Shown here piece after piece: positions 11,765-30,263 of a stretch of DNA of 64,000 nucleotides. The notes beneath the pieces were generated by a model. It made no database searches. It saw nothing but the letters and a program-made list of their open reading frames with translations, and was not told the DNA's origin. The position numbers and the translations under genes are program-made. This DNA comes from Macrostomum lignano. Lineage: Eukaryota. Position 1 is the first letter of the stretch, and every line of letters starts with the position of its first letter. Where the stretch lies: positions 1 through 64,000 of the forward strand of contig NIVC01001520.1 of assembly GCA_002269645.1 (NCBI GenBank). The letters are read 5' to 3'.

Positions 11765-14700
11765 ATGACCCGCTTGCGTGTTTTATTTCAAGTATTTTTA
11801 TATTCGTGTGCACTGATTTGTCAGCCAATGTCCGCTGCGCTCTACAATAGACGATTGGTAAGTTATTTGATATTACAACCAAATTTGAAAAATGCCAAAA
11901 AATAGTAACAGTTTTCCGATAATTTTAATTTATGTCGTATACATTATACTATTATTATATTTTTAAACTCAAAAGTCTATAAATTTATTTTTGCGCCTAT
12001 TATTTCTAGAATTCAAATAAAAGTAAGAATCTTATAAAACAAAAAATTTCACTAGTAAATTTTATATGATTCATAAATACTTTAATGGCTATACTTGATT
12101 GCGTAATTATTTACTAAGTATTAATGGACACTAATGTTTCTCACTGAAATGTTTCTCACGGCGGTTTGTACTAGTAGAAAAATGAATGTGACATTTAACA
12201 ATTAATTTTATCATTGATTTTTTGGGATAAAAGCAGTAAAAGAAATGCTTTGAAAACTAAATTTACCTTGATATCGACACAAGATTATTAAGAGAAATGC
12301 AAAAAGTTGCTGTACCGTTGTAGCAGTTTAAAAAGAAAGAAATTTATCCCAAAGGCTCTAATGAAAAACCGACATCCAGACCGGCAGCGGCTCCGGCGCT
12401 GGCTCGATGGGCGACGACGAAGGCAGCGGCTGGGGCAGCGGAGACTCCGCAGCGTCTGGCCAGAGAAGCCCAACGGAGAAGTCTGGCGACCCGAATCAGC
12501 AAAACTCCAGCGTGAGACAGCTGAACCTGCCCGTCCTGACCGACCGTTCGGCAACCGCGGACTGGAACTCTGACGGCAGCACTTGTGAGCTCTTCTGGGA
12601 CAGGCACTAAGACAGACAGACAGACAGACAGACAGACAAACAGACAGACAGACAGACAGACAGACAGACAGACAGACAGACAGACAGACAGACAGACAGA
12701 CAGACAGACAGACAGACAGACAGACAGACAGACAGACAGACAGACAGACAGACAGACAGACAGACAGACAGACAGACAGACAGACAGACAGACAGACAGA
12801 CAGGCAGACAGACAGACAGACAGACAGACAGACAGACAGACAGACAGACAGACAGACAGACAGACAGACAGACAGACAGACAGACAGACAGACAGACAGA
12901 CAGACAGACAGACAGACAGACAGACAGACAGACAGACAGACAGACAGACAGACAGACAGACAGACAGGCAGGCAGGCAGGCAGACAGACAGACAGACAGA
13001 CAGACAGACAAGCAGGCAGACAGTAGGCGGCAGTCAGCCTCACACTGCTCATCGATCCGATGAAGCTCCTCAGCATAACGCCGGAAGCTTCAGGTCTCCT
13101 CAATTCGTAGTGGAAAGAATGACAGAGAAACAAAAAATTCACACTTTCGATTTCATCTCTCTTTGTTCTTGCCGCAAATTTCCCTGACATCCGGAATGGA
13201 ATGATCTCGTGGTTGAGGCCTGGATTCACAGCCATCGAATTCATCGCAGTGCTATCGATCGAGCCTGACAAACAGAATTATTGCTACTAAAAGAGATATC
13301 CAGCGTGGCCAAGAAAAAAGCTGTTTTGGGTAGATCCTGTGGAAGGTGATGAAGCTGGCAGCTGAGTTGACCCCCCCCCCCCGGCTGATTTGGGAGGTGT
13401 TGGCCTGCAGCTCCTGTCGCTGGCTCCATTTTAGGCTTCAACTGGCATAAAAAAATGTTTTTTTCTCATAGCTATTTTCATATCGCTCATTAAGCTCAGG
13501 TGCGGGTTGGTGCTGCTGCATCAATTAGAGCTCAGGCTCAATGTATGCCAAGAGTTAAGTGGATATGCCTGGTTGAACTGGTCATTTTTTTCTGATTGTT
13601 GCATCGGTGCTGCTTTTAGAAGAGGCGGAGTGCTGAACCACATTCTATGTGGCAGTTTTATTATTAAATTCCACTTGGGTTCCACCTTCCTTATGATCCT
13701 TAGTTGCTGGGCCACTGCCAACCTCTCAGATCCCGAATTTCTGGGCCAGCCTCCCAGCTGCTCAGTTGCTGTGCTAGCCTCCCAGATCCTTAGTTGCTGT
13801 GCCAGCCTCCCAGATCCTCAGTTGCTGTGCCAGCCTCTCAGATGCTCAGTTGCTGGGCCAGCCTCTCAGATGCTCAGTTGCTGGGCCAGCCTCCCAGATC
13901 CTCAGTTGCTGGGCCAGCCTCCCAGAGTGTCAGTTGCTGGGCCAGCCTCTCAGATCCTCAGTTGCTGGGCCAACCTCCCAGATCCTCAGTTGCTGGGCCA
14001 GCCTCCCAGAGTGTCAGTTGCTGGGCCAACCTCCCAGATCCTCAGTTGCTGGGCCAGCCTCCCAGAGTGTCAGTTGCTGTGCCAGCCTCCCAGATCCTCA
14101 GTTGCTGGGCCAGCCTCCCAGATCCTCAGTTGCTGGGCCAGCCTCCCAGAGTGTCAGTTGCTGTGCCAGCCTCCCAGATCCTCAGTTGCTGGGCCAGCCT
14201 CCCAGATCCTCAGTTGCTGGGCCAGCCTCCCAGATCCTCAGCTGCTGGGCCAGCCTCCCAGAGTGTCAGTTGCTGGGCCAGCCTCTCAGATCCTCAGTTG
14301 CTGGGCCAACCTCCCAGATCCTCAGTTGCTGGGCCAGCCTCCCAGAGTGTCAGTTGCTGGGCCAACCTCCCAGATCCTCAGTTGCTGGGCCAGCCTCCCA
14401 GATGCTCAGTTGCTGTGCCAGCCTCCCAGAGTGTCAGTTGCTTGGCCAGCCTCCCAGATCCTCAGTTGCTGGGCCAGCCTCCCAGATCCTCAGTTGCTGG
14501 GCCAGCCTCCCAGATCCTCAGCTGCTGGGCCAGCCTCCCAGATCCTCAGCTGCTGGGCCAGCCTCCCAGAGTGTCAGTTGCTGTGCCAGCCTCCCAGATC
14601 CTCAGTTGCTGGGCCAGCCTCCCAGATCTAAGGCTTAAGGCTTAATCCAACAGCCATAAGAACAGAGTCACCGCCTCGAAAAGTTCAAATGGATCCATTT

Positions 14701-29700: not shown

Positions 29701-30263
29701 GGCTGGGATGGGATGGTATGGGATGGGATGGGATGGGATAGGCTGGGATGGGATGGGATGGAATTGGATAGGATGGGATGGGATAGGATACGATAGGATA
29801 GGATAAGGATGGGATGGTATGGTATGGTATGGGATATGATAGTGTGTGACGGGATGGGATGAGATAGGAATGTATGGGATAGAATAGATAGGATGGTATG
29901 GGATTTGTTAGGAGAGTCAGAAATTTAACAGAGCTGGATAAATGTCGGTATATTGCAAAAAGGTATTAAATTGCGAGCTTCACTCCTGCAGATCCCCCAA
30001 CCGCTTCCACAGAGGACATGTCGGACAGCACAACGAACTCGGCCGCTCCGGCCAGCTCAGAGTCGGCCCTCGTGCAGCCGACGGCCCTAATTGGCATTGT
30101 TTCCGGTGGCACCGCGGGTGTCCTACTTATAGTAGCTCTGATAGCGTTTTGCATCTATCGGAAACGCAAAGCGGACGAAGGCTCCTACTCGCTGGACCCG
30201 GGGAAGAAAGCTCCGGCCAGTAGCGAGTATCAGAAAGCACCCACTAGGGAATTCTACGCTTAA
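11765..30263 (+). CDS. Syndecan-family transmembrane proteoglycan with thyroglobulin type-1 and SEA-like ectodomains. Predicted exons 11765-11857, 12380-12584, 16258-16633, 22389(or 22386)-22579, 29992-30263; about 378 aa
   Basis: Signal peptide [24 protein letters not shown]. Ser-Gly/acidic GAG sites [22 protein letters not shown]. Six-Cys TY motif (PC...LACD...[19 protein letters not shown]...PSC). SEA-like [25 protein letters not shown]...VRVVSF. TM segment followed by [13 protein letters not shown]...[11 protein letters not shown]. All four intron phases (0,1,2,1) are compatible; total 1137 nt. Extra exons cannot be excluded. Confidence 0.8.
12610..13012. repeat. (GACA)n microsatellite
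   Basis: About 100 tetranucleotide units, in syndecan intron 2. Confidence 0.98.
13700..14627. repeat. 28-bp minisatellite (CAGCCTCCCAGATCCTCAGTTGCTGGGC)n
   Basis: More than 30 variant copies. Confidence 0.95.
15340..16185. repeat. 21-bp minisatellite (GGTGGGATTATCTAAACTTCA)n
   Basis: About 40 variant copies. Confidence 0.95.
16682..17270. repeat. 41-bp dimeric minisatellite (GTCTGACACCCTGTGAGTCTT + GTCTGACATTCTATGTGTCT)
   Basis: Alternating 21- and 20-bp related subunits. Confidence 0.93.
17505..17822. repeat. 22-bp minisatellite (GAGATTCTCCGCAACTCTGTTT)n
   Basis: About 14 copies. Confidence 0.93.
17844..18217. mobile_element. 374-bp MITE with ~23-bp terminal inverted repeats and an 8-bp target-site duplication
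   Basis: Left end GGGTGGGTTTCATAAACGCGAAA; right end reverse-complemented GGGTTGCTTTCACAAACGCAAAA. GTTGAAAT flanks both sides (17836-17843 and 18218-18225). Internal (AAACTTCATAACCGCG)n array. Confidence 0.88.
18765..20195. repeat. 43-55-bp minisatellite with an internal CTGACT...AGTCAG inverted repeat
   Basis: Unit CACCCACCCTGACTCTGGTGACTCTGGGGCAGTCAGCATGGATATCATTAAA with length variants; nearly 30 copies. Confidence 0.95.
20745..21242. repeat. (ATGG)n microsatellite
   Basis: Direct reading. Confidence 0.97.
21914..22290. repeat. 28-bp minisatellite (GGACCTCAGGGAGGGTATCAGGTCAACA)n
   Basis: About 13 copies. Confidence 0.93.
23470..24470. repeat. 16-bp minisatellite (GGACTCAGGGAGAGGT)n
   Basis: About 60 essentially perfect copies. 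Confidence 0.98.
25021..25775. repeat. 31-34-bp palindromic minisatellite (AGTCACTCCCTGCCCCGAGTGACTGAGAATT)n
   Basis: Each unit contains AGTCACTC and its reverse complement GAGTGACT; the 3' copies are a 34-bp variant. Confidence 0.95.
26448..26978. mobile_element. MITE, PIF/Harbinger-like
   Basis: GGGGTGTTTCTCGAAA at the left; TTTCGAGAAAGACCCCC at the right; CAG on both flanks; interior rich in CTTACG/CGTAAG inverted motifs. Confidence 0.65.
26982..27471. mobile_element. Second MITE, PIF/Harbinger-like, abutting the first
   Basis: TIRs GGGGTTGTTTTACGAAC and (reverse complement) GGCGGTGTTTTACGAAC; flanks CAG and CTG. Confidence 0.65.
27770..28012. repeat. 18-bp minisatellite (AGTTTGTGAAGATTCTTT)n
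   Basis: About 13 degenerate copies. Confidence 0.9.
29510..29905. repeat. (GGGAT/GGATA)n pentanucleotide tract
   Basis: Direct reading. Confidence 0.92.

Follow-up and report, generated by a model that had tools for sequence, protein, structure and literature searches.

In reviews, the syndecan ectodomain is regarded as an intrinsically disordered region that carries glycosaminoglycan (GAG) chains. GAG sites next to a folded module are known from domain I of perlecan, where SGD triplets lie just N-terminal to a SEA domain, the latter being reported to favour heparan sulfate assembly. Among the syndecans themselves, a SEA domain in the central ectodomain has been described for echinoderms in a 2023 review (Dolmatov and Nizhnichenko, Mar Drugs 21:417, PMC10381214). 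Within the limits of the searchable library, no paper on thyroglobulin type-1 (TY) domains in syndecans was found, nor was anything on the domain structure of Macrostomum or Schistosoma syndecans. The present work concerns a syndecan gene of the flatworm Macrostomum lignano, which is located in a 64,000-nt stretch of contig NIVC01001520.1 (assembly GCA_002269645.1); the whole stretch analysed is hereafter called the window, and all coordinates refer to its forward strand. In all likelihood the locus is a functional five-exon gene for a syndecan-family protein, a type I transmembrane proteoglycan whose ectodomain includes a TY and a SEA-fold domain, and it would be the second paralog of the M. 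lignano gene Mlig001759. The central position of the SEA module is a feature in common with the echinoderm syndecans, which differ in belonging to deuterostomes and in having no reported TY domain.

The closest relative of the encoded protein is M. lignano PAA65095.1 (Mlig001759g1, UniProt A0A267EU77), which is 34% identical to it over 267 aa (E 4e-26). The two are collinear from the TY domain to the C-terminal EFYA and have an unusual 17-residue stretch of the tail in common. Mlig001759g1 and g2 (PAA65095.1 and PAA80286.1) contain a signal peptide, an SGSGSG/acidic cluster, a TY domain, a SEA-like domain, a stalk, a transmembrane (TM) helix and an EFYA tail in the same order as the window protein, and the database name of A0A267EU77 is “Thyroglobulin type-1 domain-containing protein”. 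They differ from the window protein in their length of 445 aa, a long insert in the TY domain, the retention of the sequence RRG|SILAE in the SEA-like domain and the presence of at least one additional small exon preceding the last one.

The five exons of the window gene (Table 1) join into an open coding sequence of 1137 nt, which codes for 378 aa and ends in APTREFYA followed by the stop codon. GT donors and AG acceptors are present at all junctions, and the intron phases 0, 1, 2 and 1 are mutually compatible, introns 2, 3 and 4 being as long as 3.7, 5.8 and 7.4 kb, respectively. The same phase-compatible model had been put forward in an earlier sequence-only reading of the window and could be rebuilt exactly from the raw sequence. 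There is an alternative in-frame ATG at position 11723, 14 codons upstream of the modelled start at 11765, and an alternative in-frame acceptor of exon 5 at position 30013, the use of which would drop seven residues of the stalk.

That the five exons form one gene is best supported, among the evidence available, by the gene structure common to the window gene and the paralog, as introns 1–3 occupy homologous positions with identical phases in both. Intron 1 (phase 0) is located in the paralog directly before the GSGSGSG run. Intron 2 (phase 1) interrupts a Tyr codon, which precedes the first Cys of the TY domain by two residues in the paralog and by one in the window protein. Intron 3 (phase 2) falls in the codon after LAF in the paralog (KVLAF|RRGSILAE) and after VSF in the window protein, that is, at the beta2/beta3 turn of the SEA-like domain. 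A tblastn comparison of the paralog with the window yielded matches to exons 3 and 5 only. Judging from these alignments, the window gene is a second, old, divergent and apparently unannotated syndecan paralog of Mlig001759.

The Mlig001759g1 locus on NIVC01001685.1 (10001–99198) takes up 89 kb for 445 aa. Its reconstruction calls for at least one unannotated-looking micro-exon of about nine codons (PSDAKNLKQ) in a 72-kb intron, five exons failing at the last junction, and another gene call of 216 aa is found inside the same intron. Because the paralog needs at least one such extra micro-exon before its last exon, the 7.4-kb intron 4 of the window gene may likewise hide a missed one.

Introns 2–4 of the window gene (12610–25775) are mostly occupied by long tandem arrays, namely (AGAC)n ×103, a 28-mer ×33, a 21-mer ×41, a 41-mer ×14, 22/44-mer and 16-mer arrays, a 52/95-mer ×28, (ATGG)n ×124, a second 28-mer ×14, a 16-mer ×62 (99% identical) and a 31-mer ×23. 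These arrays create most of the long spurious open reading frames (ORFs) found there on both strands. A further array, purine-rich and composed of 24-bp and 6-bp units with a higher-order repeat, begins about 115 bp past the syndecan stop codon (30380–33263; GC skew +0.65 to +0.71).

Relatives outside M. lignano were sought with the 378-aa model as well. A word-indexed protein search returned one relative, from the tapeworm Anoplocephala, which is 27% identical to the model and collinear with it from the CFC motif to EFYA; that only a single match was obtained is probably due to SG-rich low-complexity words filling the candidate list. When the Anoplocephala protein was used as the query, 28 cestode and trematode proteins were found under the names “syndecan” and “Thyroglobulin type-1 domain-containing protein”; for many of them, precomputed matches to both PF00086 and PF01034 are on record. 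The window protein aligns with these relatives over four regions: the TY core, an alpha/beta region, the TM helix and the tail. The conserved TY core reads Y.P.C...LY..RQC....CFCVNVTTG....C and the alpha/beta region RI...LE.....G.QRV.SV ... YY.V.L.STGH ... RL.EG.L. Representatives of this set, namely Schistosoma japonicum “Syndecan isoform 1”, Echinococcus multilocularis “syndecan”, Fasciola hepatica “Syndecan” and Anoplocephala Aperf_G00000072660, resemble the window protein in the TY domain (CFCVNVTTG), the SEA-like domain with the S.GH motif and without a G/S cleavage motif, the TM helix and the EFYA tail. They differ from it in being only 24–31% identical, in a long insertion in the beta2/beta3 loop and in longer acidic stalks, and they show no obvious N-terminal SGSG cluster within the aligned region.

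The C-terminal part of the window protein matches Pfam Syndecan (PF01034, IPR001050) with 56.1 bits against a gathering score of 25.2, the match covering residues 317–376 and profile positions 5–64 of 64. Its C1 region departs from the R-x-K-K-D-E-G-S-Y consensus in one substitution (K to A), which is also present in the M. lignano paralog, and the C2 region ends in EFYA, a C-terminus of the PDZ-ligand type. There is a single TM pass, including the stretch GIVSGGTAG, with glycines spaced as G323xxxG327xxxG331, and dimerisation is predicted from this GxxxG motif only. A search of PDB sequences with the window protein gave matches limited to the TM and tail segments of neurexin and syndecan. At the level of sequence, the protein is a syndecan by every mark of the family. 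A sequence scan of the model places six SG dipeptides among acidic residues (positions 34, 36, 47, 51, 57 and 66), and a stalk rich in Ser, Thr, Pro and Ala extends over residues 289–316.

The TY-like segment contains six cysteines (102, 121, 134, 139, 141 and 164) with the motifs LQC134 and C139-F-C141-ADQLTG. For its evaluation, a custom hidden Markov model (HMM) was built from 61 TY domains, all taken from the non-flatworm syndecans described below, and run against the six-frame ORF pieces of the window (1032 in total, each of 30 aa or more) together with the gene model and nine homologs. The exon-3 ORF scored 23.5 bits (E = 1.9e-6), a similarity well beyond chance, the runner-up among the window ORFs having an E value of 1.4. 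Among the family members scanned singly, 14 of 21 matched PF00086 at E ≤ 0.01 (best E 7.3e-7), and the TY domain of the S. japonicum syndecan reached 27.9 bits, above the cut-off of 20.6. The only non-tail matches of a flatworm-family profile to the PDB were weak, and all of them were to TY proteins (saxiphilin, IGFBP-2, IGFBP-4, Trop2 and a thyropin). In the AlphaFold2 models of the relatives the TY part has a pLDDT of about 70–89; the top Foldseek lists obtained with these models contain no TY structure and are dominated by the larger SEA-like domain.

The TY domain is followed by a segment of about 120 residues in which amphipathic and hydrophobic stretches alternate. It aligns with the corresponding segment of the paralog with a Smith–Waterman z of 10.9, a score reached by none of 500 shuffles. 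The Pfam SEA match of the paralog is sub-threshold at 24.1 bits and covers profile positions 11–103 of 106. In AlphaFold models of the paralog (P0043) and of a cestode ortholog the TY part is directly followed by a beta-alpha-beta-beta-alpha-beta domain, with block-mean pLDDT values of about 70–89 in the former and about 70–95 in the latter (one 10-residue block at 68). With the paralog model, Foldseek returned four PDB matches at E ≤ 0.001, starting at 2.9e-4, and all of them contain SEA domains: human MUC16 SEA5 (7sa9 B, 7sa9 A and 8gkl_E) and TMPRSS6 (9nrc). The next SEA domains were those of a mouse transmembrane protease (2e7v, E 3.6e-3) and MUC16 (1ivz, E 5.1e-3), and the target-normalised TM-scores for stand-alone SEA-domain chains were 0.57–0.62. 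The results with the cestode model were noisy: ferredoxin-like domains of M20 peptidases were found, with a MUC16 SEA domain at rank 15 and the SEA-containing Gpr126 ectodomain also present. The models show the domain after the TY part of this flatworm family with a predicted SEA-type, ferredoxin-like fold.

A G/S-[VI]-V-V motif, at which autoproteolysis takes place, is present in many SEA domains, though not in all. It is absent from the window protein, the beta2/beta3 turn of which reads VVSF|STRQALTV. The corresponding turn reads FRRG|SILAE in the paralog, and in the parasite proteins it carries a long insertion and no G/S motif. The prediction that the window copy does not self-cleave stands, whereas the paralog Mlig001759 may still do so. 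The sequence-only reading had already described a six-Cys TY domain and, after it, a SEA-like domain devoid of a GSVVV-type motif. The former is borne out by the Cys/QC/CFC pattern, the custom HMM and the relatives that exceed the Pfam threshold; the latter by the alignment with the paralog and the SEA-type fold of the paralog model, the Pfam score of the window protein itself remaining sub-threshold, and the motif is indeed missing from the turn. Its core proposal of one gene coding for a GAG cluster, a TY domain, a non-cleaving SEA-fold domain and a syndecan tail is borne out, the domains following in the same order in the paralog and in over 20 proteins of cestodes and trematodes.

Several observations weigh against a functional gene of this architecture. 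No gene call covers the homologous last exon on NIVC01001346.1 in GCA_002269645.1, and no near-identical protein was found in a set of 5.8 billion proteins, for which reasons low or no expression is possible. Moreover, there is no AATAAA or ATTAAA poly(A) signal within 4 kb of the syndecan stop codon. These points, together with the introns swollen with tandem repeats and the loss of a G/S motif that the paralog has kept, would be expected if the locus were a silent or decaying copy of the M. lignano syndecan gene, with a reading frame that is open by chance or owing to recent duplication. This explanation is nevertheless improbable. The 34% identity between the paralogs makes the duplication an old one; even so, each of the five exons is open and has canonical splice sites, and the six TY cysteines, the S.GH motif, the GxxxG-containing TM helix, C1 and EFYA are all retained; the orthologs of parasitic flatworms lack the G/S motif as well, so its loss is no sign of decay. 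In addition, the window aligns with NIVC01001346.1 at 84–98% nucleotide identity, and in this second genome copy the last exon (29992–30263), the only exon of the window gene that it covers, corresponds to 18424–18811 of the compared locus, is intact and is 97% identical at the nucleotide level. The two copies of the exon differ by five synonymous and two non-synonymous changes, with four synonymous and no non-synonymous changes in the tail, a pattern that points to purifying selection between the two assembly copies and is counted here in support of a functional gene.

The other adverse observations relate to the ectodomain. The window protein has no match to PF00086 even at E ≤ 10, and its match to Pfam SEA (PF01390; residues 185–241, E 0.0028) is below the cut-off, with 18.2 bits against 26.4. 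A sequence profile of the SEA-like region retrieved no SEA entries from the PDB, and the AlphaFold2 models are of the paralog and the cestode ortholog, not of the window protein. Judged by Pfam on the window protein alone, the syndecan assignment would be solid and the TY and SEA assignments would not. If it is added that the ferredoxin-like fold is common and that many of the Foldseek matches are unrelated enzymes, the protein could be imagined as a syndecan with an unrelated, flatworm-specific ectodomain that merely resembles TY and SEA. We consider this very unlikely, as relatives pass the Pfam TY threshold and the TY HMM, built independently of the flatworm sequences, finds the exon-3 segment. 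As for the SEA part, the four best Foldseek matches of the paralog are SEA-containing proteins, its Pfam SEA match spans nearly the whole profile, and its RRG|S sequence is situated at the beta2/beta3 turn, exactly the SEA cleavage position. Profile searches, by which the sequence-only reading proposed to judge its TY and SEA domains, leave the window protein below the Pfam thresholds; its TY domain is supported by the custom HMM and the relatives, and its SEA-like domain by the paralog. The least credible explanation is a chimeric model in which the TY/SEA exons (3 and 4) come from a gene for a secreted protein and the EFYA exon from a conventional syndecan gene distinct from it, an arrangement that the long, repeat-rich introns 2–4 would allow for. 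The sequence-only reading had named such a split of the exons between two genes as a refutation. It is argued against by the three homologous introns in the same phases in the paralog, by the compatibility of all phases, by the fact that individual annotated proteins of M. lignano, of cestodes and of trematodes unite the SG cluster, TY, SEA-like, TM and EFYA parts in this order, and by the lack of other syndecan-type upstream exons in the window, where the paralog matches exons 3 and 5 only.

The syndecan with folded TY and SEA-like modules was also compared with EpCAM and Trop2, to which the sequence-only reading had likened it. The likeness consists in the succession of a TY domain, an alpha/beta domain and one TM helix, and the window protein differs from both in lacking the N-terminal EGF-like (Cys-rich) domain and in its tail, which is of the syndecan type and unrelated. 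Kinship was rejected, since neither protein is among the top 50 Foldseek matches and the family profile reaches Trop2 only in the TY part (E 0.085); the resemblance stays an analogy. With perlecan domain I the window protein would have in common the putative GAG sites preceding the SEA module; perlecan is, in contrast, a secreted basement-membrane protein without TY, TM or syndecan tail.

A HMMER search of 1.84 billion representatives, carried out with a family profile that included the translations of window exons 3 and 5, resulted in 915 hits. Among these are many non-flatworm syndecans of 250–470 aa with one or two canonical TY domains between the SG/acidic cluster and the TM helix and tail; these TY domains score 50–97 bits with Pfam PF00086. 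Two TY domains are found in molluscs, namely Physella, Elysia (UniProt “Syndecan”, A0A3S1BP65), Solemya, Magallana gigas (XP_034310776), Liolophura, Gigantopelta, Ylistrum and, in a partial sequence, Candidula. One TY domain is present in the brachiopod Lingula anatina (“syndecan-4”, XP_013402199.1), the annelid Owenia and the nemerteans Lineus and Tubulanus. No SEA-like domain was found in these brachiopod, annelid, nemertean and mollusc TY-syndecans. One more protein, P0053 from a metagenome or transcript set, is collinear with the window protein from the signal peptide and possesses a TY domain, a segment with the SEA-type motif PGSVIVD, in which the turn reads IRPG|SVIVD, and a syndecan tail. 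This segment gave no Pfam SEA match at E ≤ 0.1, and its pairwise similarity to the M. lignano SEA-like domains is not significant (z < 1). In P0040, a protein from a Logan assembly with a syndecan tail, a K319L-like PKD domain (PF22352, 54 bits) precedes two TY domains.

The sequence-only reading had suggested a search of lophotrochozoan proteomes for proteins combining TY, SEA and EFYA. The combination of TY with a syndecan tail is widespread, and the SEA-like domain was found in flatworms and not in the TY-syndecans of the other phyla listed above. The novelty implied by the view of the protein as a domain-shuffled class of syndecans was overstated, given that the A0A267EU77, S. japonicum and Lingula entries are public and the SEA domain of echinoderm syndecans has been published (PMC10381214). 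The architecture of TY plus SEA is itself not new, being already standard in flatworm syndecan database entries, with the TY part present across other Lophotrochozoa.

By analogy with known proteoglycans and with the SEA domains of mucins and proteases, the following way of action can be suggested for the product of the window gene. After removal of the signal peptide, the SG/acidic cluster would receive heparan or chondroitin sulfate chains, and the disulfide-bonded TY and SEA-fold modules would form a folded pedestal holding the GAG-bearing tip off the membrane, with the SEA-fold module as its rigid, membrane-proximal part. The two modules may also serve in ligand binding or protease inhibition, cysteine proteases being the putative targets of the TY module, and, by analogy with perlecan domain I, the SEA-fold module may help heparan sulfate to be assembled on the adjacent SG sites. 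The GxxxG motifs of the TM helix would drive dimerisation, as expected from established syndecan biology, C1 would link the protein to the cytoskeleton and EFYA would bind PDZ proteins, as known from other syndecans. Because the Gly-Ser turn is absent, the window copy is expected to stay a single chain, which would be shed only by external proteases, and the paralog may self-cleave. The coordinates of the corresponding parts of the gene are given in Table 1.

Table 1. Parts of the M. lignano syndecan gene in the window and the observations on which their assignment is based.
Feature	Position	Strand	Basis and remarks
Exon 1: start codon and hydrophobic, signal-peptide-like N-terminus	11765..11857	+	Followed by a phase-0 intron; same in the paralog P0043
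Exon 2: Ser-Gly/acidic putative GAG-attachment cluster and linker	12380..12584	+	Phase-1 end inside a Tyr codon
TY domain (residues C102–C164), in exon 3 (16258–16633)	16263..16451	+	Six Cys, LQC, CFCAD..TG; custom HMM
SEA-like domain, N-terminal half (beta1-alpha1-beta2)	16452..16633	+	End of exon 3, ends RVRVVSF; phase-2 intron at the beta2/beta3 turn
Exon 4: SEA-like domain, C-terminal half (LRRILEDG)	22389..22579	+	No G/S self-cleavage motif; S.GH motif conserved in flatworm homologs
Exon 5, first part: Ser/Thr/Pro/Ala-rich juxtamembrane stalk	29992..30077	+	Alternative in-frame acceptor at 30013
TM helix with GxxxG-type motifs	30078..30155	+	Within the Pfam Syndecan match (317–376); aligns with the TM of all homologs
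Cytoplasmic tail: C1, variable region, C2 and stop	30156..30263	+	Pfam PF01034, 56.1 bits; PDB syndecan-4 tail 1ejp

The rest of the window contains a number of other genes and repeats. Upstream of the syndecan gene, on the minus strand, the same ORF start (MSLRLRNWQNISKSWVYLHISSTLMPYKLIADQTMQSILHLEKGAMCHISPKLTPQLKD...) occurs twice about 1.9 kb apart (6884–7180 and 8746–9114), which looks like a dispersed or segmental repeat. Downstream, also on the minus strand, there is a Cys-rich ORF of 231 aa (36323–37018) with a signal-peptide-like start and no Pfam match; it overlaps a region with a 407-aa gene call in an older assembly, and that call has no Pfam domain either. It is followed on the same strand by a single-exon gene for a myosin essential light chain (38880–39584), which is 100% identical to Mlig029894g1, the annotated product being longer (195 aa); this match identifies the window as M. 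lignano DNA. Two adjacent genes or exons for universal stress proteins (Usp, PF00582) are located on the plus strand at 40710–41171 and 42040–42399, the first complete in one ORF (98 bits) and the second partial. Exons coding for SPX (50248–50973, +) and EXS (53842–54336, +) domains belong to an XPR1-like phosphate exporter gene, with tandem repeats coding for Ser, Pro and Leu between them. An uninterrupted pol-type ORF of 1197 aa (56305–59898, +) comprises aspartyl protease, reverse transcriptase, RNase H, integrase zinc-binding and integrase core domains and, judged from these coding domains alone, looks like an apparently intact long terminal repeat (LTR) retrotransposon of the Ty3/gypsy type. 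Finally, a very long tandem array at 60226–63882 (AT skew +0.36) gives rise to an artefactual 1218-aa ORF of GILRFLI... repeats on the minus strand.

Taken across the superphylum, in molluscs, annelids, nemerteans, brachiopods and flatworms, syndecans are built with disulfide-bonded TY modules; in flatworms, among them Schistosoma, Echinococcus, Taenia and Fasciola, a SEA-fold module is present as well. Since most of these sequences are listed in the databases as “uncharacterized” or “thyroglobulin-like”, this observation is useful for annotation and for the study of proteoglycan evolution. The gain from the window locus itself is smaller and consists in a further syndecan paralog, apparently without annotation, from a flatworm amenable to genetics; it is set apart from its sister by the SEA cleavage motif. 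The presence of TY domains throughout Lophotrochozoa, of SEA-type domains in flatworms and echinoderms, and of a TY domain with a PGSVIVD motif in P0053 leads to the tentative and rather doubtful idea that folded modules are ancestral to syndecans and were lost in vertebrates, flies and nematodes, which would account for the fully disordered ectodomains there.

If this idea is true, the pair of M. lignano paralogs, one with and one without the SEA cleavage motif, would provide a genetic test of the role of SEA cleavage in proteoglycan shedding, for which M. lignano, as a transgenic and regenerating animal, would be the setting. More speculatively, a structured and surface-exposed syndecan ectodomain in the parasitic flatworms could be of interest as an antigen or a drug-target scaffold.

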